Shown here: in pieces, positions 14,712 through 58,969 of the stretch
How the letters are laid out: the number at the start of each line of letters is the position of its first letter
Numbering within the stretch: the first letter of the stretch is position 1
Notes under the pieces: model-generated
Seen by the model: the letters and a program-made list of their open reading frames with translations, nothing else
What the model was told of the DNA's origin: nothing
Database searches by the model: none
Program-made: the position numbers and the translations under genes
Origin: Neoechinorhynchus agilis
Lineage: Eukaryota; Animalia; Acanthocephala
Assembly (NCBI GenBank): GCA_051530055.1
Contig: CM121342.1
Coordinates: 12,477,480 to 12,541,479 of the forward strand
DNA: 64,000 bases
Direction: 5' to 3'

Positions 14712-14796
14712 CTTCTTTCAGGTCCCCAACTTTCTTTCAGGTCCCTAACTTTCTTTCAGGTCCCTAACTTTCTTTCAGGTCCCTAACTTTCTTTCA
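14712..14796 (+). repeat. 19-bp minisatellite (ctttctttcaggtccctaa) x ~4.5
   Basis: tcagg recurs every 19 bp from 14718. Confidence 0.95.
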
Positions 14797-27900: not shown

Positions 27901-27919
27901 TGAAATTTAAATCAATTTA

Positions 27920-29365: not shown

Positions 29366-29374
29366 GGTTACTTT

Positions 29375-29793
29375 TTAAGCTCTTACTAAACTCGCTTATG
29401 CGTTTTATATTGCAGTTTTTCTCAACGTCAAAGGTAAATGCAGACTTTCCACGGGTGAATTAAGCACAACTTATGCACAGAGTTGTGGTACGCGCCCTAA
29501 AACTCACAATATGACTTCCCGTGGTCTATGAATCTGTCAAATGAATACGTTGACTAAACCTAAAACGTATGGTTAGAACTTACTTTTCAGAGCTATGAAA
29601 ATCCAAACCATCAATGCACCGCAAACAGGTAGTGACATCGCCGTGAAGTTTCAAGAAAGTCGTCTCTCACTCAAGCATGTAGACGCCGGCGAATTTCGGA
29701 GTCAATGGCAAGCCCACCGCTAACTCATCTGTTTGATCGAAGAACGTGATTTCGAATTCAAATGAGGTCATACTCGTGAACCGTTAAATTGGG
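29375..29793 (-). mobile_element. Decayed PLE RT motifs B'-C-D (left arm)
   Basis: Reverse complement of 46960-47380. Confidence 0.75.
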
Positions 29794-30936
29794 GCAATGA
29801 TTGGTGATTCGGCCCATAATTCAATCGTTTTAGACTGTGGGGCATTGGTTAAGAGAGCACTAACATCTACTGCGAACATTCTACATTGCTCGACGTTTAG
29901 TTTCTCGATTTGAACCGTAAACGTTGGGCCGTACCTAATGTGCAATGTGGCCGTTGCAATGATTTAGGATTCGGCCGATAATTCAATCGTTTTAGACTTT
30001 GGGGCATTGATGAAGAGAGCATTAACATCAACTACAGACATTCTATATCGCACGGCGTTTAATTCATCTATTTCACGCGCAAACGTTGGGCCGCACCAAA
30101 TGTGCAATGTGACTATCTCAAGGATTCGTGATTCGGTCCATAATTCAATCGTTTTAGATTGTGGGGCATTGGTAAATAGAGCACTAACATCTACTGCGAA
30201 TATTCTACATTGCTCGACGTTTAGTTTCTCGATTTAAACCGTAAACGTTGGGCCGTACCTAATGTGCAATGTGGTCGTTGCAATGATTTAGGATTCGGCC
30301 GATAATTAAATCGTTTTAGACTTTGGGGCATTGATGAAGAGAGCATTAACATCAACTACAGACCTTCTATATTGCACGGCGTTTAATTCATCTATTTCAC
30401 CCGCAAACGTTGGGCCGCCCTAAATGTGCAATGTGACTATCTCAAGGATTCGTGATTCGGTCCATAATTCAATCGTTTTAGACTGTGGGGCATTGGTAAA
30501 GAGAGCACTAACATCTACTGCGAACATTCTACATTGCTCGACGTTTAGTTTCTCGATTTAAACCGTAAACGTTGGGCCGTACCTAATGTGCAATGTGGCC
30601 GTTGCAATGATTTAGGATTTGGCCGATAATTCAATCGTTTTTGACTGTGGGGCATTGGTTAAGAGAACATTAACATCAACTGCATACATTCTATATTGCT
30701 CGACGTTTAGTTTCTCGATTTGAATCGTAAATTTAGGGCCGTACCTAATGTGCAATGTGGCTGTTGCAATGATTTAGGATTCGGCCGATAATTCAATCGT
30801 TTTAGACCGTGGGGCATTGATGAAGATAGCATTAAACATCAAGTACAGACCTTCTATATTGAACGGCGTTTAATTAATCTATTTCACGCGCAAACGTTGG
30901 GCCGCCCTGAATGTGCAATGTGACTGTCTCAACGAT
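29794..30936 (-). repeat. 162-bp satellite array, ~7 monomers, derived from PLE RT
   Basis: cgtttt anchor at 29826, 29988, 30150, 30312, 30474, 30636 and 30798; truncated at 30936 by a LINE. Confidence 0.97.
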
Positions 30937-33380
30937 CTCCGGTTATTAAGGAAAGATTGGGCTTGGGGAAAGAAAGATTTTTGGTAGAGGGTGGTACGAG
31001 CGAGCGGGATGAAAAAGGTTGGGGTTACGGGTGTTTACGAAGGAAGAGTATTTAGAGATGAAGGAAGAAAATTGTGGAAGTGGTTGGAGTAGACGGAGGG
31101 CGTTTTTGGGGAAAATGGAGTGGAGGTGGGCGTCGAGGGGAGGGAGTGAAGTCCCGCTTATTCTAGCTGCTCTATTGTGGAAGGTATCGAGGGAATGGAG
31201 AGCATTGACGGAAAGGGAGAGGAAAGTGGGGACAGCGTATGTAAGGATAGGAAGCATGACAGAAAGATAAAGTGAGCAGGGTGTTTAGGGGATACGCCGA
31301 GACGCCGGAGGAGTTTGAGAAGGTAAAGACGAGGGCTTGCTTTTGAGAAGGTAAATGAAATGTGGGCATCCCATTTAAGGTTTTCTTGGAAAGTCATGCC
31401 CAGTATTCGGAGAGAAGTGGAGCGTTGGGTGGGGAGAGGGAGAGGCGCAGGGATAAGATTGCGCTTGGAGATGTGGGGGACAAGCTCAAAAGATTTGGAT
31501 AAATTTAGGGAGAGGTTTAGGGTGGAGGGCGAGGAAATGAGATGGTTGATCTCGTCCATGGTTGTGGAGAGGGAGCGAGAGGGAGATGCGATGGTAATGA
31601 CTGTGTGTCATCCGTGTAAAGAAAATATTTGGTAGAGGGAGCAAGGGGATGGAGGTCATTTAGAAAAATGCCAATGAGAAGAGGGGAAAGTACGGCGCCT
31701 TGGGGGACCCCTTTAAATATGGGCAGAGAGGAAGAACATGGAGCTCCACATTGGATATATTGTTCGCGGTTGGAGCGGAAAGAGGAAATCCAAGCGACTC
31801 AAACGCTCTGGAAATATCCAGTTGCACGAGACCGGCGGTTGATGCTAGACTGGAATTAAAGCTGCGTACAAGATGCAGAGGAGAACATTTTACGGAAGAA
31901 GGGAAGTAGGAGGGTTTTAAAACATTTTTCTAAGATTTTTGAGAAAGGTGAGAGGATAGAGATGGGACGAAAGGATGTGGGGGAAATCGGCTTGTCGTTT
32001 TTGGGTAGGGGCACGACACGGGCTTCCATAAGACACGATGGCAAAGAGCTCAGTAGAAAGCTAAGGTTCGTTATGTGCATTAGAGTATCGATAAGTTCCG
32101 GGATGGTGAGACGAATGGTCCAATTTGGGATAGTCGAATTATAGGAAGATTTGCGGGACAGGCGTTTTAGGATCCCTAGGATTTCGAGAGGGGAAACTAA
32201 GAAAGGGCATGTATGAATGGGCGGATCAGAAGGTGAGAAGGGAGGTTGGGACCGTGGAGAGGTTTTTATTCATGGTGTTGAGGATTGAGAGGAGATCAGA
32301 TTTGGGGAGAGATGCGAAACAGGTGGATCTAACAAGACCAGTGACATTTTTTATTTCACGCCACCAGTTTCGATAGGGGGCGGACGAAAGACGAGATGAG
32401 AATAATAATTTGCGGGCTATACGGATTCGTTTTGTCAGTGTGGAGTGGAGGGAGGGGTAAGCAGGATTATCTGACCGGAAAGCTTTGGTGACCTGGATTT
32501 GAAGGGTTTTTAGAAAAGGCGAGAACCATGGAGGGTCGCGGTTCGAGATTCGTATTGTTTTGCGAGGAAAGGAGACCTTCATCGCAAATTCTATTAGATT
32601 TAACAAAGAGCCCATTGCAATCGAGGGGTCGGGCCAAAGATGATAGAGCGGTTTTGCGCGATAAGAGAATTGACACATGCGGCAAATGCGTGGGTATGAT
32701 GATCACGCTTATCCCAGACAACGTAGGGATAGAAAAAGGAACGTTTTTGAGGTGATGTGGGGGAGAGAAGGATGGAACAATGGTCAGACGAGGCGATCGG
32801 GGGAAGTTCGGTAGTGCACGATTATTGCCTGATGTTTGAGAAAATTTGATCAAGGCGACAGGAGAAGCGTGTAGGGAAGGTAACGAGTTGGGAGAGACAA
32901 GAGAGCGAGTGCGGGATCGGTAGTTTGTTAAAATCGCCCAACATGATGAAGTGATCGGGGGCAGTGGAAAGTAGGTCAGTAAATAGGTGGTCTATTTGTT
33001 GAAGTGTGTTGGGGATGTTTGAGGAAGGAGGGTGATAAAGGCCAGCGATAGAAATCTCACGTTGGCCATTGCAGAGGGGGAGATAAAGTTGGATGTGAAG
33101 CCATTCAGCATCGTCGGAGATGAAAAGGTAGGGTGAAGAGCAATGGTAAGGGAGAGAGGCGCGGATGAAGATCGATATGATTCCCCCGCTTCGGAAGTCC
33201 CTTGTAGGGTGAATAGCTTGAAAGTTTGAAAGGAAGGCAGATAATTTGCTATGGGGTGAGAGCCATGTTTCCGTGATTACAAGGATGTCGACGTTGCAAG
33301 AAGAGGCAACTATATGGAGCTCATCCAGTTTGGGGAGGATGCTGCGGATGTTAGAATAAAAGATTATTGGAAAGGGATAA
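30937..33380 (-). mobile_element. L2/CR1-group LINE ORF2 remnant (APE-RT), decayed
   Basis: YSNIRSILPKLDEL, DILVITETWL, GLYHPP, GDFN, LDQIFSN; RT ARVVPLPK..SFRPISILSPFSKILEK, GVPQGAVLSPLL, LRILGMTFQENLKWDAHI. Confidence 0.88.
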
Positions 33381-35630
33381 GCCACTTACTCATGGTAGCA
33401 ACACCCTATGGACTCTACATATATACTAGAATGCCATTCGGCATCAAGAATGCTCCAAAACTTTTCCAGAGATTTATTGATGGGGCTATAAAGAATATTC
33501 CCAATGTGGGGGCTTATATCGACGATATAATTTGGTCAGGAGCATTTAAAAAATTTGCATTGCGTAATGGAACGACTGCAGGCAGTTGGGATGCGAATCG
33601 AGGCAAAGAAATGTAAGATTTGGCAAACTAGTGTTGAATATTTGGGACATCGTATTGAAGGCAGAAAAATTCAGCCGACGAGAAAAAAAGTTATGGATTT
33701 GGTGAACGCTCCACCTCCACGAAATGTAAAGGATTTGAAAAGCTTTCTAGGAATGATTAATTTTCAGGAAAGATACATCCCTAACTTGCACTCCATATGT
33801 GCGCCGCTGCATACTTTGACTCGAAAGGGTATAAGATATAGATGAGAAAGAGACACGATTGCCTGTTTGTTATGCTTCGAGAGTTTTGAGCAAAGCCGAG
33901 AAGAACTATGCGACAATAGATAAAGAGGCAGTAGCCGTTATTTTCGCACTAAAAAGGTTCCACATGTATATATTCGGTACACAATTCCGATTGGAAACCG
34001 ATCACAAACCACTTGAATACATTTTTGGTAATAAGCGAGAGTTATCTAAGATAACGAGTCAGAGGCTGGCACGATGGGTTACGATATTGGGTCAGTATGA
34101 TTATACGATTCAAGCGATCAAAGGGGTAAATAACGTGATTGCCGATTGTTTATCGAGACTGGCCGCAAAAGATGATGCCGAAAAATTAGCGAGGAGCGAT
34201 CCTGAAATAGATATGATAAAGGAAATAAAGATCGATAGAATCGAGTTATCCGAAACAGTAATTCGAGAGGAAACGAGCAAAGACCAGCAGTTAAAGCGGA
34301 TCAGACGATATATTCGATACGGCTGGCCTAAATTAGTGAAATCTGAAGATGCAACCATGTTCAGGAGAACAGAGGAGATAAGCGATTCTAAAGGTATCCT
34401 AATGTTACTCGACCGAATGGTCATACCTGCAAAGTTAATAGCGTCCTGAATATACTTTACGAAGATCATCCAGGTCGAGACGCAATGGTCGCGTTGGCAA
34501 GACATTATGTATACTGACCAAATATAGACGCTGATGTTAAAAGAAAAGTAAGTCTTTGCGACGCGTGCCAGCGAGGTCGACAGAATAACCAAGAATTACC
34601 TTTAATAATGTGGGACTGGCCTGGTAAGCCGTGGCATCGATTGCATATAGACTTAGCTGGACCAGTTCGAGGAAACAGTTTCCTAGTGTGTGTGTCGATG
34701 CTTGCACAAAATAGCCAGAGGTGTGGAAGATGGAAAAAGAAACGACGACCAGGAGCATTCTAGTGAAACTCGAAGTGTTTTGCACGATTTGGAGTGCCAC
34801 ATTCGATCGTCTCTGACAACGGACCGCAATTTATATCAAATGAGTTCCGAAACTTCTGCAGAAAGCATCAAATCAAGCACATAAGATCGAGTCCCTACCA
34901 TTCCCCCCAACGGATTGGCCGAAAGGTTCATTGGAACATTAAAAAGAAGAACCGAAGGTTTGAGAACAAATTAAAGCACTGTACTGGAGTTTTTGCAGGC
35001 ACATCGAAGTACACCTCATGTGTCGACTGGAGTTGAACCAGCGAAAATAATGACAGGTAGACGACTACGAACGATGCTCGACAATGTTAAACCGTCTATG
35101 CAAGGTCGAATGGAAGATCGAAACAAGAAACATGAACAAGATTCGTGGGAGAATAGAACAATGCGTGTTTTCGGAGAAAGTGAACCGGTATGGTACAAGA
35201 GGAATAAAGAAGATAATTGGATGAAGGGAAGGATAAAGAAAATGAATAGTCCGGTGTCTTATACAATAACCGGAAACCACGGAGGAGAGCGACGATGTCA
35301 TGGTGACTATATCCGAAAACGAGAAATCTCAATGAGCAAAGAAGAGCAAGAAGTAGGTAAGTGCGACAAGACTCGAGAAATCGACGAATCCAAGGTCAAA
35401 GAAGAACCAAAGATTACAAGCGAGGAACAAAACGAACCGGAACCAGCGGAATTGAGACGCGGGACACCAATACGAAGACAAACCATCAGACTTTTCGATG
35501 AGTACTTGGGTCGCAGAGGGGAAGGAGATGTGGTAGAACGTCAGTGATACGCATAGTACGATCGATAGTGTGTAGTGCATGTACGTTTGAACATTGTGGT
35601 TTGACACTTAGGAACGGATAATTGGTCACT
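33381..35630 (+). mobile_element. 5'-truncated Ty3/Gypsy (Mag-like) element: RT C-part, RNase H, integrase, PPT and partial 3' LTR from 35529
   Basis: RMPFGIKNAPKLFQ, YIDD, PVCYASRVL..AEKNYATIDKEA, TDHKPL, GWP, SDNGPQF.S.EF, TPH..TG..PA; PPT gaggggaaggaga followed by TG. Confidence 0.9.
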
Positions 35631-35632
35631 CC

Positions 35633-38600
35633 ATGCGCAATTTTCGTTGTAACGAAAAAAGCGTTGTTTCTGGTGATTTCCTTTCGCGACCTCCCGATCC
35701 TCCTGATGATCGTGGAGGTTTGGATGTCGGTGGTTCACTAAGCTCTAACAACTTGCGAATTCCAATGTCCTTGGAGAAGCGAGAGCAGTTGCTCTCTGAT
35801 CTCCTGGTAAACAATTCCCAGTTGACATCGACAAAGCAACAATTTCCAAAATCAAATTCTCGAAATTACTTTTCTTTACATTCACCACCTCCCACCAAAT
35901 TCCAGCTTTTGTCCTTCCTCGACCGTCGCCATCACGCTGGCAGCATTGCCCCGTTGTACTGCCAGCGAGATATTTTATCGAAGAAATAAGCCTGCTCTTG
36001 AGTCTCCGGTTGCCTCTCTCAATTTCTTCGAGAGATCCTTGAGCAGAGAGAGTGCCGAGCTGCCGAGCGCTCCATACGTCTCTACCCCAAAGGGGACAAA
36101 ATAGTGAGCCCTCGATAGCTGCATATATTTTCGTACCTTCCTCCCTTCCGCTGCACTGGCGGCACCACCGGCGATTTCGAGGGAGTAGGGGATGTTGCTG
36201 GCTGCGAGGGTGTCCACACACGTGGCGTCCCAGAGAAGGCATTTGCCCTCCCGCCACGGCAAGACCGAAATTCCATCGGGCCTACGGCCGTCTAGTCTGC
36301 AGAGGTGGGCGGGTTCCAGGATGTTCGGGAAGTTCGCCGTTCTCAACGCCCGAGAAATTACGTTATTGATTTCAGAATGGCGTGAAAACCTTCCTGCTGA
36401 CCTTCTGCAGACGAGACCGTGTCGCCCGAAAGCATCAACCAAAGACCCACATCGACAGCGATGGGGCGTGCATATCGGGAGACCGAGTCTTAAGGATACT
36501 GCGATCCTCGTCACCTCGTCAGTAAGAAGAGTTCCCACAGATGCCAGAGGAACAGCCTCCAACCACGCCCCAGATTCTCGTGTTGAAACTGCCAACAGTC
36601 TAGCTCGGACGACCCCATCGCGAGAACCTGAAAGAAGAGAGCTGTGAGCTCTCGCGACAAGAGGTCCGTCCCAGATCGACTGTCTGAGGCCATTCACGGG
36701 AACTTGGTTAGCGCCTGTCTGCTGGCACCATTCCTCAACCGCCACCACGAAATCCCGGTCAAGACAAAACTTTTCTTTCAAAATGTTCTTCGAGACTGGT
36801 AGGCTCCCCTCAAACGATCCAAGAAAGGCCGGCAAAGCAAGGTCGACTAGTGCCCGAATTCCCAATCCCCCAGATGACACAGGCAAAGAAGCTTGTCGCC
36901 ACGCCTCATCTGAGAGCTGGACATTTAAAATACGCTCGAGGCAAGCCCTCACCTTATTGTAGAGCGTTGCCAATCCTTACCGACAAAAAGACGGCCTTTC
37001 ATAGCCATTTTTAAATCCAAACCTATCCTTCCCAAACAAATCATGTACGACCAAGCAGTAAGTCCGTGGACTCGGACCTCCAAGAACGATGGTATTAAAA
37101 GGATCGATCACATATTACGCCGGCAATCTACGAATCTACCTGACTTCACACAATTGGTTGGATCACTTTGTCAAGTTTTCGAAATCTAACCTCCCTAAAG
37201 AAGTCTACGATATTACGTCCAGTTCTCAAAAAGTTCAATTTCTAGTTAAAGGTGTTGAACCTTCTCTCAGCAAACAAGAACGGAACGAGTTCGAACAAAC
37301 TTTTGGATGCAATATAAAGTTCTAAACTCAAGAAGGACGGGCCAACCTATTCCTATTGCCATGGTAGAAGGACAATGGAATGTGCGTGATGAATTATGTT
37401 CTCAACAATTTTGCTCCTTCAACTGCTTCGAAATTAACTTCGTGATGAAATAAAACTATGAGCAAGATGATTTCATCTTTCCGCAATGCAATATCTGTCA
37501 GCAATGGGGCCATTGGTGCCAACGCTGCCCCAATCCTTCTCACAAAAAAATGTTGTCACTGTGGGGATTCCTCTCACGGTTCGGATCAATGTACCAATTC
37601 AAATAAACATTGCTCAAATTGTCAAGGACAGCATTCGTCTTTTTACAAAGGATGCCCACAATTCAAAAATTACTGGGCCTGGGCTCAGAATTCTCGTATT
37701 AACGCCGTGGAAAAAGCTCATTACTACAACTAAGCAAGTAGCGCCTAAACTCAATTCATTGCTTCCAAGACCCTCCTTTCGACAAGACGCCAACTCTAAC
37801 TTCTCAGGATTTTCCGGTAAAGTGCCCTCTACTCAAGTGGTAACCATGGAGGTGTTAGAGAGCAAATTAGATGAAGCTTGTAACAAGATTCTAATGATTA
37901 TGCAAGCTCGTTTTACGGAGGCAATGCTGGCTTTTGAAACAAAGATGAGCGTCTTAATTGATAAGTTAATGAACATTCAGACTATTTTTTCCTCGTGTTT
38001 ACCAGAACAAAGCTCTGCAAAACTCAAAAGAGCGAATGTGTCTGGCGAGGTTGCACGAGCAGCTAAAAAGCCGAATGGTGGCTCTCGCTCACAGCACGAG
38101 GATGATGTTGTAATGGATGAAGATCAATCAACTTCTGAATTCGTTGCAAGAGTAATTGAAACCCAATCCAGGCTGATCAACAACGGAACAGCCAATTTGA
38201 TTTCAAATGTCAATGCGAAGAAACTTTGACTCGATGGCTCAGGAGAAGGTAGGCAATGTTAAGGTGTTGCAGTGGAACTGTGGGGGTGCGACCAACCTTT
38301 TTCAGCTCACTCGATATTTACCAGGAATATCCATAGCTCTAATTCAAGAGTCAAAAAGCGTTTTTAATTTAGAGCAACTATATGTTCATCTAGCCCTTTT
38401 AAAGTTTTCGGTTTTTACATCTTTCGTTCATCCTCCCTATGGACTTGCCACACAAGGCCAAATTTCCATTTCTCAATCTTCCCTTGTTCCCTCACTGATC
38501 ATGTCCTATTCCTCTGAGGAATTGTCTTACAGTATTTTTAAAATACTTTTCAAAAAGAACTATCTCTCTTGCGGTAAAAGACAAAATCAAATGGCTCCTA

Positions 38601-40720: not shown

Positions 40721-41168
40721 ACATAGAGTTAGTAGAAGCATTCCGGCATCACCAACAAACGCTACCATGGATAAAAATCTCGGATAAAAACAATTAAAAA
40801 ATAAACAGTGTCGAAAAAATCTAGAATCGAGTTTACCAGCGTCCGCAAGTGGTCGCGACGTTTGCTGATCAGAATATGATTTAAAAAACTGGATGCCCGA
40901 ACTCTGCCAGGACGAACAAAGAAAAAAGTAAAAAGAAAGGTGGTACAAAATCAGAATTGGTGCAGAAGGAACTCGATAGGAAAAATACAGAGAAAGGGAT
41001 TTTCGAGAATTTGGATGCTATACTTCTAGAATTAAAATAGCTGATTAAACATGAACAGTGGAACGCTATTGTAAACAACAGCGCGTGTGCTTTATTTTCT
41101 CTTTTTCTGTGCAAATTCTTTTGCTAATCAACCACTTTCCATTAAATACACAACCTTTTGCACTAATA

Positions 41169-42437
41169 ATGAAGTTTTTAGAATTAAGACGAGCGACTAA
41201 CGTCGTCAAAGTCACCGATCCTAGTGAATTTTATGTCCGCCGGAAAGATCAACCTTTGGCATACAAAAATTTTCGCAATCAGCTACAAGAATCTTACAAA
41301 TACGAAAATGAATATCCTCCTAAGTGTAAACACTTTGGTTTCTTTTCCTGTGTAACATATTCACAAAAAGATGAATTATGGTACCGCGCTATTATTGGCG
41401 CCGAAAATTCATATTCAGTTACAGTACCGGCATTTATAGTGGACGAAGGTCGTACTGAAACCGCCCCACTGTCAAGTATTCAGCCGCTAAAGAATAAATT
41501 CTGCCAAATTCCAAGATTCGCATCAAAGTGCAAACTTCTGGGCATCAAACCGCTTCAAAATGAGAATGAAGAAAAGAAATGGTAAAAAGATGTAGTGAAC
41601 AGTTTTCAATTAGCAGTAAACCACGGAACACTTCTTGGTTCATTATTAAAAGTCAACGATAAGGAAGGTTGTTTTGAAGTAACTTTAAAAGACTTACAGA
41701 TTCAAGAATATGTTGGCAACAATCTTCTTAAATCGAATCTCGTGAAAGCACCCAATGAGCAACTTTCATGTTTTATTCCGCTTGAGCTTGAAATGGACAT
41801 ATAATAAATGACCTGGAGAAAAGAAATCCGTTTACCCGCGAAGATATGACCGGAGAAACCGTCGAGTGTATTATCACGGCTCTTAGCTTGATTAATTCGG
41901 GATACGTTCAAGAATATTCAAAACCGGCACCCTACACAAGCTTGAAAAAGAGTTACAGGACACCATTGAGAAAGACACATCAGTCGATTTGGATTTCCAA
42001 AACGGCGATCAGTGAGTCTTCACGGAATCGATTCCGTCTTCTCCTAGACATTCCACCCGCAACCCCATATAGCGATGAAAGCCATGGCAAAACGGCGTAC
42101 TTGGGCAGCAAACTCTCGCAACAAATTCTCCTACAACTCGAAAAGTCCTTTGATTACACTAATTATGGTCACGATAAAGAACTTCTCGAAAAGACAATAA
42201 CTTGGAAGATTACGTTTAAAAAAACATACTCACGTGCGCGAACTCTCGCAACAAATTCTCCTACAACTCGAAAAGTCCTTTGATTACACTAATTATGGCC
42301 ACGATAAAGAACTTCTCGAAAAGGCAATAACTTGGAAGATTACGTTTAAAAAAACATACTCACGTGCATTGGGCCGCAAAGACGCTACCACACTTCTTCG
42401 GCACGAATGTAAAAATCTAACACCAGCTCCACGATAG
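41169..42437 (+). pseudogene. Extended Tudor-domain pseudogene, copy 2
   Basis: VVKVTDPSEFYV...WYRAII...FIVDEGRTE...LKNKFCQIPRFASKCKLLGIKP...W*KDVVNSF (consensus W-S-x-E-A-x-x-x-F); premature stops at 41583 and 41802; internal duplication. Confidence 0.78.
42111..42370 (+). repeat. 130-bp tandem duplication inside Tudor copy 2
   Basis: aactctcgcaacaaattc at 42111 and 42241; single copy in the 9.8-kb paralog. Confidence 0.93.
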
Positions 42438-42834
42438 CTCGAATCATTGGAGAATAAAAAAGAGCGACGTGGGGAACGGCAATGCAGCTATAGATAGCGG
42501 ATGGCGATTTGGAAAACACAAAAACGACAGAATTCTATTCCGTTTGTGAATTTGGCGCACATTTAAATTTTAGGCGTAATTTTTTTTAATCGAAAAAATT
42601 GATTTGTAAAAGGTAGTAATGTAATCTGCGTGTTCAAAGTCTTTAAAAAAAGAAGCGATTTTATTCGTTTCAAAACATGGCCGAAACCGCAGCCGAAGGA
42701 TCATTAAGTCTTCCACCATTTTATGGATAAGAAATGCAGCGGACTTTTTGCCGCAGCCGCAATCGTAATCAATTAATTTTTGACGGAACGAACATTGAAT
42801 TATTTTTTAATGTGCCACTCAAGGAAAAATAGTT

Positions 42835-43391
42835 CATGAATTATCTACTGATTTCGCAATAAAACAGAAAGCGACCGTATTCTGCTCGTTCGTTTGTGAT
42901 GCTTCAGTTTTTCATTATTGAAGGCGAAAAGATGCGAAGTCCAAAACACTTTTTGCAATAAAGTCAATGTTACATTCAGCGCTTACCCTTTAAAAAAATT
43001 GCGATTAATTTCCAAAATTTACTCAAATGCTCGTGAATTATCTGCTCCTTTTGAAAAATTAACAAGCAAGAAAACAGAAAGCGACTGTATTCTATTCAGT
43101 CGTTTGTGATGCTTCAGTTTTATCGTTATTGATGGCGAAAAGATGTGATGTTCAAAATGCTTTTTGCAATAAAGTCAATGTTACATTCAGCGCTTACCAT
43201 TTAAAAAAATAGCGATTAATTTCCAAAATTTACTCAAATGCTCGTGAATTATCTGCTCCTTTTGAAAAATTAACAAGCAAGAAAACAGAAAGCGACTGTA
43301 TTCTATTCAGTCGTTTGTGATGCTTCAGTTTTATCGTTATTGATGGCGAAAAGATGTGATGTTCAAAATGCTTTTCGCAATAAAGTCAATG
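42835..43391. repeat. ~210-bp tandem repeat, ~2.5 copies
   Basis: gaaagcgac anchor at 42871, 43081 and 43292; a partial single copy at ~10400-10500. Confidence 0.92.
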
Positions 43392-43394
43392 CAG

Positions 43395-43920
43395 CAAGAG
43401 ATGTTATCTTGCCCATACTGAGAACCTCTGGCCACTTCGAGTTGGCATCTACCACCACTAACCACATTTTGCTTTGACTTGGACCCGCTAGATCAATGTG
43501 TATCCTATCCCACAGTCTGCTAGAAAGTGGCCATGTACCTGGTACCGCTTTTGTTATGGCAGGTCTACATTCCTGGCATTGCTGTCACAATCCCACGAAT
43601 TTTTCAAGATCTGCGTCGATTCCAGGTCACCATATGTGATATCTTGCTAACGACTTCATTCCTGATATCCCAGAGTGACCAGTGTGCAGATAGGATAGAA
43701 CGCTATTTCGAAGAGTTTGGAACAATGACTCTGCCTAGCCAGAGAATGATACCATTTTCTACCGCCAATTATAGCTTTCGGCTCTTGAATAGCAGCAACT
43801 CCTTCGACACTTTATCCAGCCATCGGCATTTCACATAACGTTTGACTAGCATGAGTGTTGCTTCTTCCCTCGTTGCCTGTTGAAGCGATTCCACAGATAG
43901 ATTAAATTCATCTAAGCTCG
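43395..43920 (-). mobile_element. Decayed Gypsy (Mag-like) integrase N-terminal remnant
   Basis: LQQATREEATLMLVKRYVKCRW...LAVENGIILWLGRVIVP with multiple stops. Confidence 0.7.
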
Positions 43921-43968
43921 ATGTATAACATAATACTTTTATTTTTTGTCATAATGCAAAGGGCGTTT

Positions 43969-46959
43969 GATGTTAGTGCTCTCTTTGCCAATGCCCCACA
44001 GTCTAAAACGATTGAATTATGGACCGAATCACGAATCGTTGAGGAAGCCACATTGCACATTAAAGGCGGCTCAGCCTTTGCGCGTGAAATAGAGAAATTA
44101 AACGTCGATCAATGTAGAATGTTTGCAGTTGATGTTAATGCTCTCTTCATCAATGTCCCACAGTCTAAAACGATTGAATTATGGGCCGAATCACGAATCG
44201 TTGAGACAGCCACATTGCACATTAGGTACGGCGCAACGTTTGCAGTTGAAATCTAGAAAATAAACGTCGAGCAATGTAGAATGTTCGCAGTAGTTGTTAG
44301 TGCTCTCTTAACCAATGCCCCACAGTCTAAAACGATTGAATTATCGGCTTAATCCTAAATCATTGCAACGGCCACATTGCACATTAGGTACGGCCCAACG
44401 TTTACGGTTCAAATCGAGAAACTAAACGTCGAGCAATGTAGAATGTTCGCAGTAGATGTTAGTGCTCTCTTAACCAATGCCCCACAGTCTAAAACGATTG
44501 AATTATCGGCCGAATCCTAAATCATTGCAACGGCCACATTGCACATTAGGTACGGCCCAACGTTTACGGTTCAAATCGAGAAACTAAACGTCGAGCAATG
44601 TAGAATGTTCGCAGTAGTTGTTAATGCTATCTTCATCAATGCCCCACAGTCTAAAACGATTGAATTATCGGCTTAATCCTAAATCATTGCAACGGCCACA
44701 TTGCACATTAGGTACGGCCCAACGTTTGAGGTTTAAATCGAGAAACTAAACGTCGAGCAATGTAGAATGTTAGCAGTAGTTGTTAGCGCTCTCTTAACCA
44801 ATGCCCCACAGTCAAAAACGATTGAATTATCGGCCAAATCCTAAATCATTGCAACGGCCACATTGCACATTAGGTACGGCCCAACGTTTACGGTTTAAAT
44901 CGAGAAACTAAACGTCGAGCAACGTAGAATGTTCGCAGTAGATGTTAGTGCTCTCTTTACCAATGCCCCACAGTCTAAAACGATTGAATTATGGGCCGAA
45001 TCACGAATCGTTGAGACAGCCACATTGCACATTAGGTACGGCGCAACGTTTGCAGTTGAAATCTAGAAAATAAACGTCGAGCAATGTAGAATGTTCGCAG
45101 TAGTTGTTAGTGCTATCTTCACCAATGCCCCACAGTCTAAAACGATTGAATTATCGGCTTAATCCTAAATCATTGCAACGGCCACATTGCACATTAGGTA
45201 CGGCCCAACGTTTACGGTTCAAATCGAGAAACTAAACGTCGAGCAATGTAGAATGTTAGCAGTAGATGTTAGTGATCTCTTAACCAATGCCCCACAGTCT
45301 AAAACGATTGAATTATCCGCCGAATCCTAAATCATTGCAACGGCCACATTGCACATTAGGTACGGCCCAACGTTTACGGTTCAAATCGAGAAATTAAACG
45401 TAGAGCAATGTAGAATGTTCGCAGTAGATGTTAGTGCTCTCTTAACCAATGTCCCCCAGTCTAAAACGATTGAATTATGGGTCGAATCACGAACCGTTGA
45501 GACAGCCACATTGCACATTTAGGGTGGCCCAACGTTTGCGCGTGAAATAGAGAAATTATACGTCGATCAATGTGGAATGTTTGCAGTTGATGTTAATGCT
45601 CTCTTCATCAATGCCCCAAAGTCTAAAACGATTGAATTATGTGCCGAATCCTAAATCATTGCAACGGCCACATTGCACATTAGGTACGGCCCTAAATTTA
45701 CGATTCAAATCGAGAAACTAAACGTCAAGCAATATAGAATGTTTGCAGTTGATGTTAATGTTCTCGTAACCAATGCCCCACAGTCAAAAACTATTGAATT
45801 ATCGGCCAAATCCTAAATCATTGCAACGGCCACATTGCACATTAGGTACGGCCCAACGTTTACGGTTTAAATCGAGAAACTAAACGTCGAGCAATGTAGA
45901 ATGTTCGCAGTAGTTGGTTAATGCTATCTTCATCAATGCCCCACAGTCTAAAACGATTGAATTATCGGCTTAATCCTAAATCATTGCAACGGCCACATTG
46001 CACATTAGGTACGGCCCAACGTTTGAGGTTTAAATCGAGAAACTAAACGTCGAGCAATGTAGAATGTTAGCAGTAGTTGTTAGCGCTCTCTTAACCAATT
46101 CCCCACAGTCAAAAACGATTGAATTATCGGCCAAATCCTAAATCATTGCAACGGCCACATTGCACATTAGGTACGGCCCAACGTTTACGGTTTAAATCGA
46201 GAAACTAAACGTCGAGCAATGTAGAATGTTCGCAGTAGATGTTAGTGCTCTCTTTGCCAATGCCCCACAGTCTAAAACGATTGAATTATGGACCGAATCA
46301 CGAATCCTTGAGATAGTCACATTGCACATTTAGGGCGGCCCAACGTTTGCGGGTGAAATAGATGAATTAAACGCCGTGCAATATAAAAGGTCTGTAGTTG
46401 ATGTTAATGCTCTCTTCATCAATGCCCCAAAGTCTAAAACGATTTAATTATCGGCCGAATCCTAAATCATTGCAACGACCACATTGCACATTAGGTACGG
46501 CCCAACGTTTACGGTTTAAATCGAGAAACTAAACGTCGAGCAATGTAGAATATTCGCAGTAGATGTTAGTGCTCTATTTACCAATGCCCCACAATCTAAA
46601 ACGATTGAATTATGGACCGAATCACGAATCCTTGAGATAGTCACATTGCACATTTGGTGCGGCCCAACGTTTGCGCGTGAAATAGATGAATTAAACGCCG
46701 TGCGATATAGAATGTCTGTAGTTGATGTTAATGCTCTCTTCATCAATGCCCCAAAGTCTAAAACGATTGAATTATCGGCCGAATCCTAAATCATTGCAAC
46801 GGCCACATTGCACATTAGGTACGGCCCAACGTTTACGGTTCAAATCGAGAAACTAAACGTCGAGCAATGTAGAATGTTCGCAGTAGATGTTAGTGCTCTC
46901 TTAACCAATGCCCCACAGTCTAAAACGATTGAATTATGGGCCGAATCACCAATCATTGC
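43969..46959 (+). repeat. 162-bp satellite array, ~18.5 monomers, derived from the motif-A segment of a Penelope-like RT
   Basis: aaaacg anchor at 44005, 44167, ... 46922 (19 hits, all 162 bp apart except one at 163); monomer reads ATLHIRYGPTFTVQIEKLNVEQCRMFAVDVSALFTNAPQSKTIEL, usually with stops. Confidence 0.97.
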
Positions 46960-47380
46960 CCCGATTTAACGGTTCACGAGTATGACCTCATTTGAATTCG
47001 AAATTACGTTCTTCGATCAAACAGATGAGTTAGCGGTGGGCTCGCCATTGACTCCGAAATTCGCCGGCGTCTACATGCTTGAGTGAGAGACGACTTTCTT
47101 GAAACTTCACAGCGATGTCACTACCTGTTTGCGGTGCATTGATGGTTTGGATTTTCATAGCTCTGAAAAGTAAGTTCTAACCATACGTTTTAGGTTTAGT
47201 CAACGTATTCATTTGACAGATTGATAGACCACGGGAAGTCATATTGTGAGTTTTAGGGCGCGTACCACAACTCTGTGCATAAGTTGTGCTTAATTCACCC
47301 GTGGAAAGTTTGCATTTACCTTTGACGTTGAGAAAAACTGCAATATAAAACGCATAAGCGAGTTTAGTAAGAGCTTAAAA
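46960..47380 (+). mobile_element. Decayed PLE RT motifs B', C and D, continuing in frame from the last satellite monomer
   Basis: TSFEFEITFFDQTDELAVGSPLTPKFAGVYMLE*ETTFL (B'), CLRCIDG (C, from RYVDD), FAFTFDVEKN (D). Confidence 0.8.
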
Positions 47381-47387
47381 AGTAACC

Positions 47388-48833
47388 GTGGAGATGTTAT
47401 CTGTTTCACAACTTCTCTTTATTCTCGAATTCTTAAATCAGTCGAATAGGAAACCGGTTGACAAATGTGAAATAATATACAATACAGCCGATATAATTAT
47501 GATAAATTGTGATTTTAGTAGTTCGAAATCCGGTAATGTACTTCCAAACTTAACTGATGCAATTCATGGAGTCGACGAAGCTCACGTCTATGTACTATTC
47601 TTATCTGGAGTTTCAATTGACGACATTCCAATAAACTTAAAACGCGTATTTCCTAATTTAACCTACTTATTCGTAAAACATTACAATGCTATTCCATTCT
47701 ACCAATCAATCGATTTTATTAGCAACGTGAAAGCAGTGTACGTTACTCAGATGGACATTCCGAACATCAGTCTGCATCACGAATGTCTAACGAAGGAACT
47801 CCATCTGACGGAAAGCAATATCATCCATCTCGACAACAAATTGGGAACGATGCTGCCTCAATTAGAAATACTCGATCTTAGAAGAAACCATTTGAGTGCT
47901 TTGGATGAACTTGTTGACTTTTGCAAACTAAGAGAACTTTACCTCGACCAAAACCTGATTGAAATATTACGGTTCTCATCAAGAAGTTGCTTTGAGAGTT
48001 TAGAGATACTTTCTGCTTTAGGCAATCACATTTTCGCAGTGAATATTGAACAAGGGCTTAAATTAGGTAATTTAAAAGAAATTCACATTTCTTTGCTATC
48101 TAGGATTGATCATGGAATGCAAGTTTTGCAGAAGATATCAAGCATGGAAACAATAACTATTGAAAATTCAGTTGACCACAGATATGATGCATCCAAGTTG
48201 AATGATACTCTTAACAATCTACAAACCTTAAAATTTGTTGATGGACATTTGAAAGCGTTCCCTCGAGGAGGTCAACTTACTAATAATACTATTAGGATCA
48301 TGTCACTGGCCAGTAATTCGATCGTAAAAATAGTGCAATCAGATTTCTCACACTGGCGAGGATTGCAATCCCTGGATCTTGCAAATAACCAACTCAAATC
48401 CATTCCGGATGATGCCTTTATATTCTTAGAAAATCTTAACGTTCTTAATCTTACGGGAAACAAATTGTCCGTCGATATTGTACTTCCACCACTTAGGAAA
48501 CTTTATTCAAGCTTTCTCATCTCTTTGGACAAAACCTCCTTTGTGTGGATCGATACCAAAATCAAGGAAAATCTTGCCCTTTTAAATTCCACGCGTTCAC
48601 GAGCTCAAATGTCTCATGAAGGAATTGTTAATTCTCTTCTTGATCATTTTTCAACCTTCTTCATTCCCTCTATCAATTATCCGTACGAATGGAAGGGAAA
48701 AAGGATAGTGGAGAAGCGTCAAAAAGAGGAATTTCCGAGCGGAGTTTCACCGAGAAAGGAGCTGAAAAATGCTGTAGCCTTAAATAGCAATTTCACGATG
48801 TCAAAACTTTTTCATTTCGGCATTGGAAGATGA
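47388..48833 (+). CDS. Leucine-rich repeat protein, copy B; first ATG at 47394
   Basis: 481-aa ORF (479 aa from the ATG) with 8 amino-acid differences from copy A and no disruptions. Confidence 0.9.
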   Translation: MEMLSVSQLLFILEFLNQSNRKPVDKCEIIYNTADIIMINCDFSSSKSGNVLPNLTDAIHGVDEAHVYVLFLSGVSIDDIPINLKRVFPNLTYLFVKHYNAIPFYQSIDFISNVKAVYVTQMDIPNISLHHECLTKELHLTESNIIHLDNKLGTMLPQLEILDLRRNHLSALDELVDFCKLRELYLDQNLIEILRFSSRSCFESLEILSALGNHIFAVNIEQGLKLGNLKEIHISLLSRIDHGMQVLQKISSMETITIENSVDHRYDASKLNDTLNNLQTLKFVDGHLKAFPRGGQLTNNTIRIMSLASNSIVKIVQSDFSHWRGLQSLDLANNQLKSIPDDAFIFLENLNVLNLTGNKLSVDIVLPPLRKLYSSFLISLDKTSFVWIDTKIKENLALLNSTRSRAQMSHEGIVNSLLDHFSTFFIPSINYPYEWKGKRIVEKRQKEEFPSGVSPRKELKNAVALNSNFTMSKLFHFGIGR

Positions 48834-48839
48834 TAAATT

Positions 48840-49700
48840 GATTTAAATTTCAATTTTAGAAAGGAATAAACTATTAACAAATATCGTGAAGGTTTAGCAG
48901 CATTTCAGATTATTTATCCCTCAAACTAACTCACTTTGTAATGATCAAAAGAACTGGATCACTTGACAAGATTGCATAGAGCACCAGTATCGCATAGATA
49001 AAGGCTTCCACAATCAACGGAACAAAATTCTTCGCCATAAAAGGTGACACAAAAAGACCTAAGCATTCGAATTTAAGAGCTAGAAGATATCAAATGCTAT
49101 TGAGGATATTTTTCACAGCCTAATATATGTAGGGTAGGAAAAATAGGCAGGATGTAAATAATAATTTCCGAATAAATTCTTTACATCTTTTAAAATTCAA
49201 TTAAAATATCCAAGAAATGCCCTTATTCAGCGCTTCAGCAAGCGGACCATGCAAGATACACTTACTCAAACGAAATGGCTGCGAGCCAGAATGGAAATAC
49301 GAAATGGTTTTTCGGACATAGGCCCACAGACCAACTTTGGCGAAACAAAATCTCAAAGATCGTTAAGAGAAGCCGTCTGTCAATAAAATGTCAATTCGAC
49401 TTCCGACCCTCCATGACAATGGGGAACATAATTTTGCCGGAAATACCATGAAATAGAGAAAAGGCTGTTGTCTACAAAGTTTCTTGTAGCCATTGAAACA
49501 GCAGTTACACTCGCCAAACAAGCTGAAATCCTAAGATGAGATTTGACGAACATAAGCGCTCCGATACGCGTCGATTGTCGCGCTGAACGAGGTAAAAACG
49601 GATCACGTTATAGATTATGGTTAATATATGATTTGAGCGAGTTAGACTGTCTTAATTGATTAACGGAAAAGGATTTGAACGACCAAGGAAGTTAAAAACG
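48840..49700 (+). mobile_element. Decayed PLE thumb, linker and GIY-YIG remnant (right arm)
   Basis: KYPRNALIQ (~49205), FRPSMTMGNIIL (~49400), EKAVVYKVSCSH*NSSYTRQTS*NPKMRFDEHKR (~49458-49560). Confidence 0.72.
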
Positions 49701-50058
49701 TTCCCTTAAAATCTACATGATCATAGTGACCAAACGAAGTTCAAAACGAACGGTTACTATAAAAAAATGCCATCCACATGAATTTCGTTACAATCAACAT
49801 CGCTTTATTATCCTTTTCCAATGTATTATTTTTTGGTTGTGAATAATATGATCGATTTTATAAATACAAAAAGGAAAAAAGCACGGGTTAGACCCGAATT
49901 TAAATTCTCTAAATAAATTACTATTCGTACATTCATTTACAATTTACTCGACTTGAAAGACTTGTTTTTAGACTGGGATTCTCGCTTTGTTTTCGTAAAA
50001 TAATTTCTAAGCCTCTGCCTTTCTTGGTCCGTCTCGTCGGACTTCTTCAGGTTGCTTG

Positions 50059-51050
50059 TAAGTTTTTAGCACAGATTCATCCTCGGTTTCTTCACACGAG
50101 AGCCGCGAGAGTACATCCGCCATGTTATTCTCCTGTCCTTTTATATGTTCCAAGACGTATTTGTACTGTGAAAGTATCAATCTCCAACGCACTAATCGGT
50201 GGTTTACTACTTTTCGCAAATCTCTCTTATCGCCGAATACCTAATTCAGTTGCTTATTGTCAGTTTTCAGCACAAATTCACGGCCGGCCAGAAACATGTT
50301 GAATTGGGTGACTCCGGGCACCAGAGCGAGTGCTTCTCTATCGATTTAGCATATTTTTGCTCCGCGGCTTTCAATGTTTTGGACGCATACGCTACTGGTC
50401 GATACATTTCTTTGTGTGCTTCTTGTAGTAGAACAGCGCCGACTCCTCGCTCACATGCATCACAAATAACCTGCAATTTACTCTGGCGTCAGCCAAAGCA
50501 TCCTTGATCTTTTTGATTTGGTTTGTCATCTCATCTAACCATGCCCATACACATTTCGAACTGGTCAGTTTATACAAACCTGCACACTTGGCTTGTATAT
50601 TTGGTAGGAACTTCTGCAAAAAGTTTACCGATCCAAGAAATGCTCGGAGTTCTCTTGCATTCGTTGGTGTTTTCATGTTTTGAATCGCTTTGATCCTCTC
50701 GTTACTTGGTCGAATTGAATTGTTATCCAAAATATGGTCCAAAAACGACACTTGTTGAAGAAAAATGCATTTATTTCCTCTTATTCGCATTCCAGCTTTC
50801 TGCAGCCCTTTTAACACTTCTTTCAATCTGTTTAAATGACTATCAATATCTGCAATCAACTGTTCCATATAGCGCTGGAACATTAACGGCGCTGCTGAAA
50901 CCCCGAATGGAAGCTGACAATATCGAAAATATCCGATGGGTGTGGCGATTGTCAACATAAAACGTGAATTCGGTTCCACCGTCATCTTTAAGTATGCCTC
51001 TTTTAAATCTAGTACTGAATATTTCTTTCCATTAGCAGCCAGCAACATAA
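50059..51050 (-). mobile_element. Gypsy RT/RNase H fragment with internal deletions (YxDD segment missing)
   Basis: LDLKEAYL, YCQLPFGVSAAPLMFQ, LRAFLGSVNFLQKF, CDACERGVGAVL, RPVAYASKTL, RLVRWRLIL. Confidence 0.88.
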
Positions 51051-56650: not shown

Positions 56651-57100
56651 AAAGTTTTGGTACCTTTCATGGTGTTGGGCGCGCGGAGATATAGTTAAGG
56701 TCTCAAGTGTAAAACGTCTTTTGAGGTTTTGCTCTCTCGCCACAAAATACGTGCAATTAAAATCTGCACGATGTTGTAGAGTATCTTGTCGATTATCTTT
56801 TGCGGCGGAGATTCTCTTCTTGATGCCCCGCAGGTTCAATGTTTATCTTTTTCTTGAGAGTGTTTTCGATTGTGATTAATTTATTGTGGTACAACAGAAC
56901 TCCAGTCTTCGTCTTCAATAGCGAGTGGATCGACCAATAAGTTTTATCTTTGATCAAGTTCTATCTTTCGAAGGTAACAGAATCTAAAGGCTAATTTGTG
57001 TTGCGTGGCCGGTAATCACATCTTTGGATTGCACAGTCTATTATCAAGCGAGGATATCCCTTTCAATTCTTCGGCGATCCTTTCCGTTTCTTTATGCAGA
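56651..57100 (-). mobile_element. Decayed PLE remnant (thumb and GIY-YIG C-terminus)
   Basis: LHKETERIAEELK.GYPRLIIDCAI; QHRADFNCTYFVAREQNLKRRFTLETL resembles KHRADFGDTYFLEKEK-NLKRRLVLEAL at ~63920-63997. Confidence 0.7.
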
Positions 57101-57101
57101 A

Positions 57102-57510
57102 CTGCACATTAAGGACGGCCCAACGGTTGTTATTGAGATCTAGAAACTAAACGTCGAGCAATATAGAATGTTCGCAGAAGATATGAATGCTCTCTTCACC
57201 AATGCCCCACATTTTAAAACGATTGAATTATCGGCTGACTCATCAATCATTGCAACGGCCACAGTCCACATCAAGGACGACCAAACATTTGAGGTTGAGA
57301 TCAAGAAACTAAAGGTCGATTAATATAGAATGTTAACAGTAAATGTGAATGCTCTCTTAATCAATGCCGCACATTCTAAAACGATTGAATTATCGGCTGA
57401 CTCACGAATCATTGCAACAGCCACAGTGCACATTAAAGGCGGGCCAACGTTTTTTGGTTGAGATCTAGAAACTAAACGTCGAGCAATATAGAACGCTTGC
57501 GATCGATGTG
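57102..57510 (+). repeat. Third, more diverged cluster of the 162-bp PLE-RT satellite (~2.5 monomers)
   Basis: aaaacgattgaattatcggc at 57216 and 57378; reads LHIKDGPT...KLNVEQYRMFAEDMNALFTNAPHFKTIEL. Confidence 0.9.
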
Positions 57511-57559
57511 AATGCCCAACTTTAGCAGTTTTCAGGCATGAGGGGGAGATGCCATATTA

Positions 57560-58880
57560 AAAGCTGAGGTTTATGATGTGGGTAAGAGATTCGAGAAGTT
57601 CGGGGATGATGCAGCGAAGAGCCCAGTTTGGGATTGCTAGACAAGAAATGATACGAAAAATCTCCAACTTATCAGCGAGAAACATCCTTGACCCACTGGT
57701 CATCTAGAATATTCGGAGATGATCCCCTCGTGCACCTCGTCAGAATTTTCGGTTGATGTTGTTAAGACTGCCGTTTCTTCGTTCGCAAAAGGATCAGCAC
57801 ATGGGCTTCGGCCTCAGCACCTAAAGGACATGATGTCCTTCTCCGTAGGTGATTCATCTCGTGTTCTCCTTAACGCATTGACTGGGTTAGTCGTCGTTTT
57901 CTCTGGAGACAACTTGTCTTCCAAAGCGATAGAATTGTTTTTTGGCGCTTTCTGCGCTTTAGAAAAGAGGGACGATGGGATTCGTCCCATCGCGATTGGC
58001 TCTACATTGAGACGACTAACAGGGAAAGTGATTTTTAGGCGAGTCTCAGAAGGTGTTGCTGAAATTCTTTGTCCAGTTCGACTAGGTTGCTGCACACCTT
58101 GCGGGCCGGAAGCCATGGTCGACGCACTCCGTACATTTGTTATTGAGAACGTCAAACCGTGTGTGATCCTAAAATTAGGTTTCTCGGAACGCCTTCAATT
58201 CCGTTAATCGCGACTCTCTCTTAAAAGCTGTCAGAGATCACGCACCGGAGGCTTAAGGTTATTTTAGAAATTCGTACGGAGCTGCGACCCCTCTTGTATT
58301 CAACGATCACATCATTCCTTCCGAAAGAGGCGTTCAACCGGGAGATCCGTTAGGTCCCATTGGTTTCGCGCTCACCGTGAACAAATTAGCACATTCTTTT
58401 GATGCGGAATTCAATGCCTAGCACTTGGACGAAGCTACGCTGGGAGGCGATCCCCAGGTAGTTCTTGGTGACCTGGAGAAAATCAAGATGGGGGCAAGTA
58501 AGCTAGGCATTGAATTGAGCACAGAAAAGTGCGAAATTCTATTCTGTAACATAGATAGGGGCCCTGCAAAAGACGTAATAAAGCGCGACTTTGAAAATGT
58601 TGCACCCGGGATAGAAACGATCGACCTAGACCGGCTTAAGCTTTTAGGCAGTTGCGTCTTTGATGGGAAGCGAAATTATCGGTGCTTTGAGATAGGGTCT
58701 GTGAGCTTGGATCACGCGAGGCTCTGTTCTTGATAAAGAACACCCTCCTCATCCATAAGTTCCTTTATGCTCTACGCACTGCGTCGTACAGCTTGGCAAG
58801 CTAGATAACAGATTGAAGGACTGTCGTGAGCAAGTTTTAAATGTCCAGCTGTCAGAAGAGACGTAGCTACGCAAAGTTAA
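57560..58880 (+). mobile_element. Decayed CRE-clade RT fragment
   Basis: GLRPQHLKDM, GIRPIAIGSTLRRL, GVQPGDPLGP, LDEATLGG, EKCEIL; stops and frameshifts. Confidence 0.82.
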
Positions 58881-58969
58881 TTCGTCACTTAAAGAAAAAT
58901 TGTTGGACCCGGCTACTATGTTCGGGATTGACTACTCATTCGACAATAAAGAATTTTTAAGACTTCGCG

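Follow-up and report, generated by a model that had tools for sequence, protein, structure and literature searches.

The genome of the acanthocephalan Neoechinorhynchus agilis (GenBank assembly GCA_051530055.1) carries on contig CM121342.1 a 162-bp tandem repeat whose unit reads like a piece of a reverse transcriptase (RT), which raises the question of where such a repeat comes from, how it multiplied and whether it has any function. We examined the 64 kb of DNA in which it lies (forward-strand positions 12,477,480 to 12,541,479, hereafter the window, in whose own coordinates positions are given) together with about 30 kb from other N. agilis loci (L001-L003). The window is crowded with fragments of long interspersed nuclear elements (LINEs) and long terminal repeat (LTR) retrotransposons. 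With a probability of roughly 85 %, we conclude that the repeat is a dead array grown from an internal 54-codon RT piece of a canonical Penelope-like element (PLE), and that it is a by-product of DNA repair or replication acting on transposon debris. Three arrays of the repeat were found in the window and are numbered by position:

43969 to 46959, plus strand: array 2, the main array (Tandem Repeats Finder (TRF), PLE-profile matches of each monomer, monomer-only hhalign, codon-position test).
29794 to 30936, minus strand: array 1, seven monomers, paralogous in inverted orientation to the 3' end of array 2 (TRF, self-BLAST).
57103 to 57515, plus strand: array 3, 2.5 monomers with about 80 % identity to the main array (TRF, BLAST, junction comparison, translation).

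These arrays measure 3.0, 1.1 and 0.4 kb for arrays 2, 1 and 3 respectively; arrays 1 and 3 had escaped the first-pass annotation considered below. TRF delimits the main array at exactly 43969-46959 with a period of 162, 18.5 copies, 86 % matches and a score of 4310, the same coordinates, period and copy number (about 18.5) as had been given in a first-pass annotation of this DNA made from its letters. That annotation also described the period as strict and frame-preserving. The unit is indeed 54 codons long, but one monomer, at 45913, has 163 bp (an additional G near 45917) while the others have 162, so the last 6.5 units read in another frame than the first 12. Slicing the array at 162 bp and translating the slices reproduces the motif-A-like peptide that had been noticed, with peptides such as DVSALFTNAPQSKTIELWAESRIVETATLHIRYGATFAVEI.KINVEQCRMFAV and the commoner form ...ELSAES*IIATATLHIRYGPTFTVQIEKLNVEQCRMFAV.

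The monomers are far from uniform. Their pairwise identity averages 87 %, and there are at least two subtypes, A and B, which are 77-80 % identical to one another. Subtype A (...ELW(A/T)ESRIVE.ATLHI..) is open in some monomers; subtype B (...ELSAES*IIATATLHIRYG..) has an in-frame TAA in every case. This stop at codon 22 is common to 12 of the 18 main-array monomers, and several carry further stops. The left edge of the main array falls in the middle of a monomer, against unrelated sequence. At the other end the final partial monomer continues in frame to ...TSFEFEITFFDQTDELAVGSPLTPKFAGVYM...CLRCIDG, and it is this passage from repeat into unique sequence that allows the origin of the unit to be traced.

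Judged by sequence comparison, the unit derives from the motif-A segment of the RT gene of a canonical PLE. We used the last monomer plus its 3' flank (198 aa, with X at stops) as a phmmer query in an exhaustive search of 1.84 billion proteins at E<=1e-3. The seven resulting matches are every one a PLE-type RT (best E 6.4e-7), and all seven are RT fragments with the motifs SFDVESLFTN(I/V)P, Q(I/V)DGVAMGSPLGP and (R/K)(Y/F)VDD. Relatives of one of them, P0002, combine RVT_1 with a C-terminal GIY-YIG domain, which is the defining architecture of canonical endonuclease-positive (EN+) PLEs (PMC8557442).

An independent PLE profile was built from 83 relatives having RVT_1 plus GIY-YIG, with the window sequence excluded, and was scanned against the six frames of the window. 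Its positions 172-293 align to 46823-47137, that is to the last monomer and flank, with 31.0 bits and an E-value of 3.7e-11. The lack of any significant PLE match, the outcome that was to speak against the first-pass assignment, is thus not what we found. Every monomer is placed at the same profile positions, 172-213, and in hhalign 46 columns of a monomer-only profile align with the PLE profile (Prob 89 %, P 2.1e-6). The unit corresponds to 'ytlkDtFdFvnkvs...mvSFDVeSLFTNiP..ETIei', profile positions ~166-213, and ends with catalytic motif A.

The match is specific to PLEs as compared with the LINE and LTR RTs of the window. These reach at most 4.3 bits on the PLE profile, and for the window peptide PLE fragments give 38-42 bits, those same LINE and LTR RTs 0 bits or less. 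The monomer profile, whose comparison with RT profiles had been suggested as a check, matches that of PLEs. A sequence search of the PDB at E<=10 returned no telomerase reverse transcriptase (TERT) chain and only matches at chance level.

The DNA on the 3' side of the main array divides into three parts:

46960 to 47142, plus strand: unique 3' continuation of the dead PLE RT (profile, phmmer, tblastn).
47143 to 48920, plus strand: host-gene segment of 1.78 kb with an intronless leucine-rich repeat (LRR) gene (nucleotide identity to L002, Pfam LRR_8).
48921 to 50067, plus strand: presumed 3' part of the same PLE copy, ending at the sharp boundary of an inverted duplication at 50067.

The first part runs from motif B' (FFDQTDELAVGSPLTPKFAGVYM) to the first residues of motif C (LRCID), has two in-frame stops, and is matched by tblastn with PLE consensus positions 238-295 at E 1e-7. 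The PLE-type motifs A, B' and C thus follow one another in the right order from the last monomer into the flank, as the first-pass annotation had supposed, with motif C cut off after RCID. PLE sequence ends at 47142, where the LRR segment splits the motif between RCID and the following G. The in-frame run from the last monomer had earlier been read on through both CLRCID and FTFDVE. CLRCID holds as the start of PLE motif C, whereas FTFDVE belongs to the 5' region of the LRR gene; we rejected the latter (~47320) as a candidate for PLE motif D/E because it lies within the LRR-gene segment shared with L002.

The inserted segment brings about 250 bp of its own 5' region and contains an intact LRR open reading frame (ORF) of 479 aa at 47394-48833 (Pfam LRR_8 E 3.7e-19), annotated as ACOME3_007607 with a product of 466 aa. 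It is 90 % identical in nucleotides to positions 9770-11526 of L002, covering the 5' region and the body of a paralog, ACOME3_007916 (87 % aa identity), located at a distance of 1.1 Mb in gene-rich surroundings that include GST, IF-2B, Med10 and ADH genes. Both genes are intronless, so that retrocopying and DNA duplication are both possible for the copy in the window. L002 also has a PLE 3' half of its own at 7918-9345 (+). It is better preserved (profile 328-459 at 52 bits, GIY-YIG 473-570 at 15 bits) and immediately precedes the paralogous LRR gene, which has the same orientation. We found no nucleotide similarity between this PLE and that of the window, and the presence of an LRR gene beside a PLE at both loci may be due to chance in a PLE-rich genome.

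Beyond the LRR segment, a decayed remnant of a GIY-YIG endonuclease is found at 49335-49595 (+), matching PLE profile positions 454-537 with 13.7 bits and an E-value of 6.5e-6. With the LRR segment removed, 415 bp separate profile position 293 from the GIY-YIG match at 454, where about 480 bp would be expected for the ~160 positions in between. This colinear spacing makes it plausible that the array, the RT remnant and the GIY-YIG remnant belong to one interrupted PLE copy. A second PLE GIY-YIG remnant lies elsewhere in the window at 63705-63968 (+), covers profile positions 473-554 (E 5e-6) and has a better preserved 'YRIHCEQCEKVYIGQT' core. The two remnants are unrelated at the nucleotide level.

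How the segment first became duplicated can be approached from the junctions between units. The first-pass annotation suggested amplification through a repeat, gaatcac.aatcattgc, at the monomer junction. We rejected this sequence as a recombination substrate: it occurs once per unit, within the part that is colinear with the 3' flank, and no counterpart is seen on the only candidate for a 5' parental flank, which is the sequence to the left of array 3:

56997 to 57102, plus strand: left flank of array 3 ('WPVITS...', compared with motif 2 'RPIiS').

Comparison of the unit with the 3' flank shows similarity that stops at ...AATCATTGC, and comparison with the array-3 5' flank shows similarity that begins at TGCACATT. 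These two limits leave about 10 nt (AACGGCCACAT) whose origin is uncertain, and microhomology amounts to at most 2-3 nt. The monomer-to-monomer junction of array 3 (AATCATTGCAACGGCCACA) is identical to that of the main array, suggesting that the initial duplication happened once and that its product reached a second site. Array 3 is truncated on its right side by LINE sequence. On the left it starts at the 5' breakpoint of the unit (..ELHIKDG) and is in frame from its left flank, which suggests a preserved parental 5' junction, and the flank may accordingly represent parental PLE RT upstream of the unit. The profile alignment reaches position 135 only when this flank is joined to the monomer (10.9 bits).

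Once formed, the array has evolved free of coding constraint and has been reshuffled. Variable sites are spread evenly over the three codon positions (26/25/24, chi-square p 0.96), so that coding constraint has been absent since amplification. Blocks of two to three monomers recur at 98-100 % identity with offsets of 5 and 8 units, and on its 3' side the main array ends in a repeat of A-B dimers. For array 1, TRF finds that a 324-bp period fits better than 162 bp (89 % vs 80 %). The last five array-1 monomers are 99.4-100 % identical to 46238-46959; there follows a skip of two units, and the first two match other monomers. The dimers, the recurring blocks and the two-monomer difference between arrays 1 and 2 all show unequal exchange or slippage. 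With head-to-tail monomers (18.5, 7 and 2.5 units) and concerted evolution or higher-order structure, the repeat has the organization of satellite DNA. On the evidence of its sequence, the main array is dead, non-coding DNA and most probably without function.

Several observations weigh against this interpretation as a whole or in part. Pfam gives no RVT_1 match for the monomer, the dimer or the monomer plus flank; we ascribe this to a fragment too short and too decayed for a general RT model, which is why a PLE-specific profile was needed. Single monomers score just 2-11 bits apiece on that profile, so the PLE case rests on the consistency of the monomers together with the colinear 3' flank. 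A word-index homology search of 5.8e9 clusters with a composite peptide gave no annotated protein closely resembling the monomer or this PLE lineage; with no intact or single-copy parental PLE of the family found in this way, we infer the exact boundaries of the parental unit.

Other points concern the element around the array. Nothing was detected by PLE-profile or tblastn search in 48921-49334, where RT motifs D/E and the thumb would be expected, and the RT and GIY-YIG remnants could therefore be two separate PLE fragments. Rfam yields no match to the hammerhead ribozyme or to any other family, neither with the gathering threshold over the whole window nor with E<=1 over 41000-51000, and self-BLAST reveals no direct repeat of the element ends that would correspond to a pseudo-LTR (pLTR). 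The absence of both is expected for an old, truncated copy and has no bearing on the origin of the RT. The left flank of array 3 taken alone yields no PLE match even at E<=100, and as it resembles the monomer no more than shuffled sequence does we rejected it as proof of a parental 5' junction. Lastly, we infer the lack of function from evolution that looks neutral.

Weighing these points, we hypothesize that the array arose in five steps from a PLE copy. The motif-A segment of one copy would first have been duplicated in tandem and in frame, presumably by replication slippage, end-joining or template jumping of an RT, given microhomology of no more than the few nucleotides noted above. The duplicated segment would then have expanded and been reshuffled by unequal exchange or slippage, after which array-bearing sequence may have reached at least two loci, either by retrotransposition in trans or by DNA duplication. 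The LRR-gene segment would have landed in RT motif C at a subsequent stage. Finally, the 3' part of the array and its flank would have been duplicated in inverted orientation (~98-99 %), with LINEs and LTR elements inserted around them.

The inverted duplication of this last step is seen directly as a feature on the other strand:

26212 to 29793, minus strand: inverted paralogue of 46960-50067 (self-BLAST 98.3-98.7 %, profile matches).

This segment holds the RT remnant, a copy of the LRR gene (27920-29365) and the GIY-YIG remnant (26683-26943). With the array included, 26212-30936 (-) corresponds to 45817-50067 (+) over about 4.3-4.7 kb at ~98-99 % identity, the two copies being 13-15 kb apart. 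Both have one sharp 3' end (50067 and 26212, respectively) and face each other head-to-head across LINE and LTR debris. The two intact LRR copies, 27920-29365 and 47388-48833, differ at 15 nucleotides, eight of them non-synonymous (pN/pS 0.31). A clean 476-bp indel at 27107-27582 separates copy 1 from copy 2, in which the empty site is 49171/49172, and its sequence is unique in the window. We considered a link between this indel and a tandem repeat of 476 bp at 7637-8685 and rejected it: the two are unrelated and their equal length is coincidental. The inverted pair could be an ordinary duplication, a misplaced haplotype, or a PLE with its inverted 5'-truncated partner.

The last of these options leads to a different explanation for the dispersal, in which the arrays, possibly with the embedded LRR gene, spread by retrotransposition as a non-autonomous PLE derivative mobilised in trans. 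The copies have a common 3' end and differing array starts (7 vs 18.5 monomers), which is a pattern of 5' truncation, and their head-to-head arrangement resembles that of PLE insertions, which often bear an inverted 5'-truncated copy at their 5' end (PMC8557442). Here the two inverted copies are 13 kb apart and not adjacent, although the LINE and LTR elements that form the 13-kb spacer may have been inserted later. Array 3 has the same junction at another site, but arrays 2 and 3 are just 10 kb apart on the same strand, so that local DNA duplication is also possible. Target-site features, a pLTR and a hammerhead were not found for these copies, the word-index search gave no annotated protein close to this PLE lineage, and the copies can be accounted for just as well by an ordinary segmental duplication in inverted orientation or by a misplaced haplotype, the assembly having been made from pooled worms (PMC12690905). 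We therefore consider spread by retrotransposition unlikely.

It is conceivable, and in our estimate rather improbable, that the entire unit of array, PLE RT remnant, LRR gene, GIY-YIG remnant and common 3' end constitutes a mobile non-autonomous PLE derivative. If so, the LRR gene and the RT-derived array would have been carried together to new sites and the head-to-head pair would be a PLE insertion structure, amounting to gene transduction and satellite seeding by a Penelope-like element.

Could the repeat instead serve the cell, as a functional satellite in centromeric or heterochromatic DNA with a nucleosome-sized unit, or as a regulatory repeat of the LRR gene? A unit of 162 bp is within the typical satellite range and the array has a dimeric higher-order structure and homogenised blocks, but the arrays are short (0.4-3 kb), lie amid ordinary transposon debris and contain monomers up to 23 % diverged. 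The sole dyad is weak and imperfect, with arms of 11-12 nt. As for regulation, the array stands directly upstream (~430 bp) of an intact LRR gene in both copies, and the pN/pS of that gene is the 0.31 given above. In L002, however, no array occurs in the 10 kb to the left or right of the paralogous LRR gene, and hence the LRR gene does not need the array. Taken together, we regard a function of either kind as very unlikely. Separately from this, it is conceivable, if rather improbable in our estimate, that the 162-bp repeat is a major satellite of N. agilis; no monomer copy is present in L002, and the longest array in the window is that of 3.0 kb. The dyad itself is present in every monomer (for example at 44555-44596, GCCCAACGTTTA / TAAACGTCGAGC, 83 % complementary with an 18-nt spacer) and is unremarkable.

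The assembly is another possible source of tandem and inverted repeats. It is a hybrid MaSuRCA build of Oxford Nanopore, HiFi and Illumina reads for which worms were pooled, haplotypes purged and scaffolds made with Hi-C (PMC12690905); repeats of both kinds are error-prone in such assemblies, and the ~1-2 % difference of the inverted copy is compatible with an allele. An artefactual expansion would yield near-identical units, though, and the monomers observed here are individually distinct (77-100 % identity) with an ordered pattern of subtypes. Their order recurs in a second array and a diverged third array exists. We find it highly improbable that the array or the inverted copy is an artefact.

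We dismiss as next to impossible that a host gene encodes the 54-residue repeat as a protein domain. In favour of this reading are a unit length divisible by three, the open frame of a few subtype-A monomers and the ATG that starts the longest ORF of the main array (111 aa, 43921-44256), but the shared in-frame stop in most units, the 1-bp frameshift, the lack of an excess of changes at third positions and the absence of a close protein among the 5.8e9 clusters all argue otherwise.

The surroundings of the arrays contain other elements as well. The inner end of array 1 adjoins the C/T-rich 3' end of a minus-strand LINE that occupies 30937-34000, has an apurinic-type endonuclease ORF at 32822-33385 and shows a strong GC skew of +0.33 to +0.36 on the plus strand. 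On the other side of the main array, the LINE sequences that truncate array 3 on the right (57516-60664) are in both orientations and include an open 546-aa RT ORF at 59024-60664 (-) with an RVT_1 match of E 6e-21, which may belong to a young element. A repeat family is common to 40799-43391 and 8679-10499 (93-99 % identity); the first copy, beside the main array, has internal duplications of 130 bp in two copies (42111-42367) and of 211 bp in 2.5 copies (42856-43391). Further tandem repeats are the 476-bp repeat already mentioned (2.2 copies, 92 % matches) and one of 19 bp in 4.4 copies (14713-14796). Two ORFs, 18816-20498 (-) and 37486-38229 (+), have exact N. agilis protein matches and no Pfam domain; the 247-aa ORF protein clusters with near-identical 'hypothetical proteins', five in all and encoded on two chromosomes, and is probably an unclassified repeat. 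ORF 9417-9980 has no Pfam match.

So much transposon debris in the window fits what is reported for a relative in the same phylum. In another acanthocephalan repeats make up ~66 % of the genome and PLEs ~15 % of the transposon content (PMC7943196), and the N. agilis genome paper mentions neither Penelope nor satellites (PMC12690905). For annotation of acanthocephalan genomes the locus calls for caution, as the annotated LRR gene that closely follows the repeat is itself a duplicate inserted into transposon debris. Its main value is as a clean and still-attached example of a tandem repeat born from the coding core of a retrotransposon. As the array still continues into the RT at its 3' edge, and its 5' start is probably kept at another locus, the origin, the unit phase and the exchanges among monomers are directly readable. 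No new mechanism or long-standing question is opened by it unless the repeat proves abundant or the whole unit mobile.

The first-pass annotation had put forward a satellite built from the PLE RT core as a novelty. We found no publication in which a tandem repeat is traced to the motif-A segment of a PLE RT, and to that extent the suggestion stands, while Penelope-related satellites and satellites derived from ORF2 have both been published. Transposon-derived satellites come mostly from LTRs, terminal inverted repeats (TIRs) and untranslated regions (UTRs), and a few from LINE ORF2: PROsat of Phodopus roborovskii and Pvc20 of Phoca vitulina derive from L1 ORF2, and the chicken HinfI/CR1 repeat comprises 3' UTR and part of ORF2 (PMC9659126). 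In the N. agilis repeat, as in these three, a short internal piece of a retrotransposon ORF was amplified head-to-tail and is now non-coding. The source differs, being the motif-A segment of a PLE RT and not a LINE, and here three short arrays are seen.

Penelope-related satellite DNAs are also on record: HviSat02-2707 from Harttia catfish (PMC11955569), and in the flea beetle Omophoita octoguttata many OocSat families, with the whole of superfamily SF1 among them (PMC11846391). They are likewise tandem repeats similar in sequence to Penelope elements, identified by nucleotide similarity to transposon libraries, whereas for the N. agilis unit each residue can be placed on the RT core, and the rest of the dead element is still joined to the array. 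Non-LTR retrozymes and PLE-linked hammerhead repeats (bioRxiv 10.64898/2026.07.22.740005; PMC4209133) resemble it as tandem repeats of a few hundred bp with a connection to PLEs. Those repeats derive from ribozyme-bearing terminal repeats and the N. agilis unit from an RT coding region; a retrozyme would have a hammerhead in each unit, and a search of the array with its flanks at E<=1 gives no Rfam family.

Like canonical EN+ PLEs (PMC8557442), the copy in the window shows the order A, B', C of RT motifs, with a GIY-YIG remnant following on the same strand; its start looks 5'-truncated and it faces an inverted partner head-to-head. It departs from them in its dead ORF, its internal 18.5-fold amplification and its interruption by the LRR gene, and in that neither pLTR nor hammerhead is detected. 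A further parallel is offered by the 3' UTR repeats of Ogre elements, from which satellites have arisen (PMC7004042), and the satellite-like Helentron arrays of oyster (PMC7492417), which arise in non-coding parts of LTR elements or Helitrons, unlike the RT-derived unit described here. They too are short arrays inside transposon copies, found at several loci in the same phase, and the same unit phase at several loci in N. agilis fits a model in which the array was born in a transposon and then dispersed.

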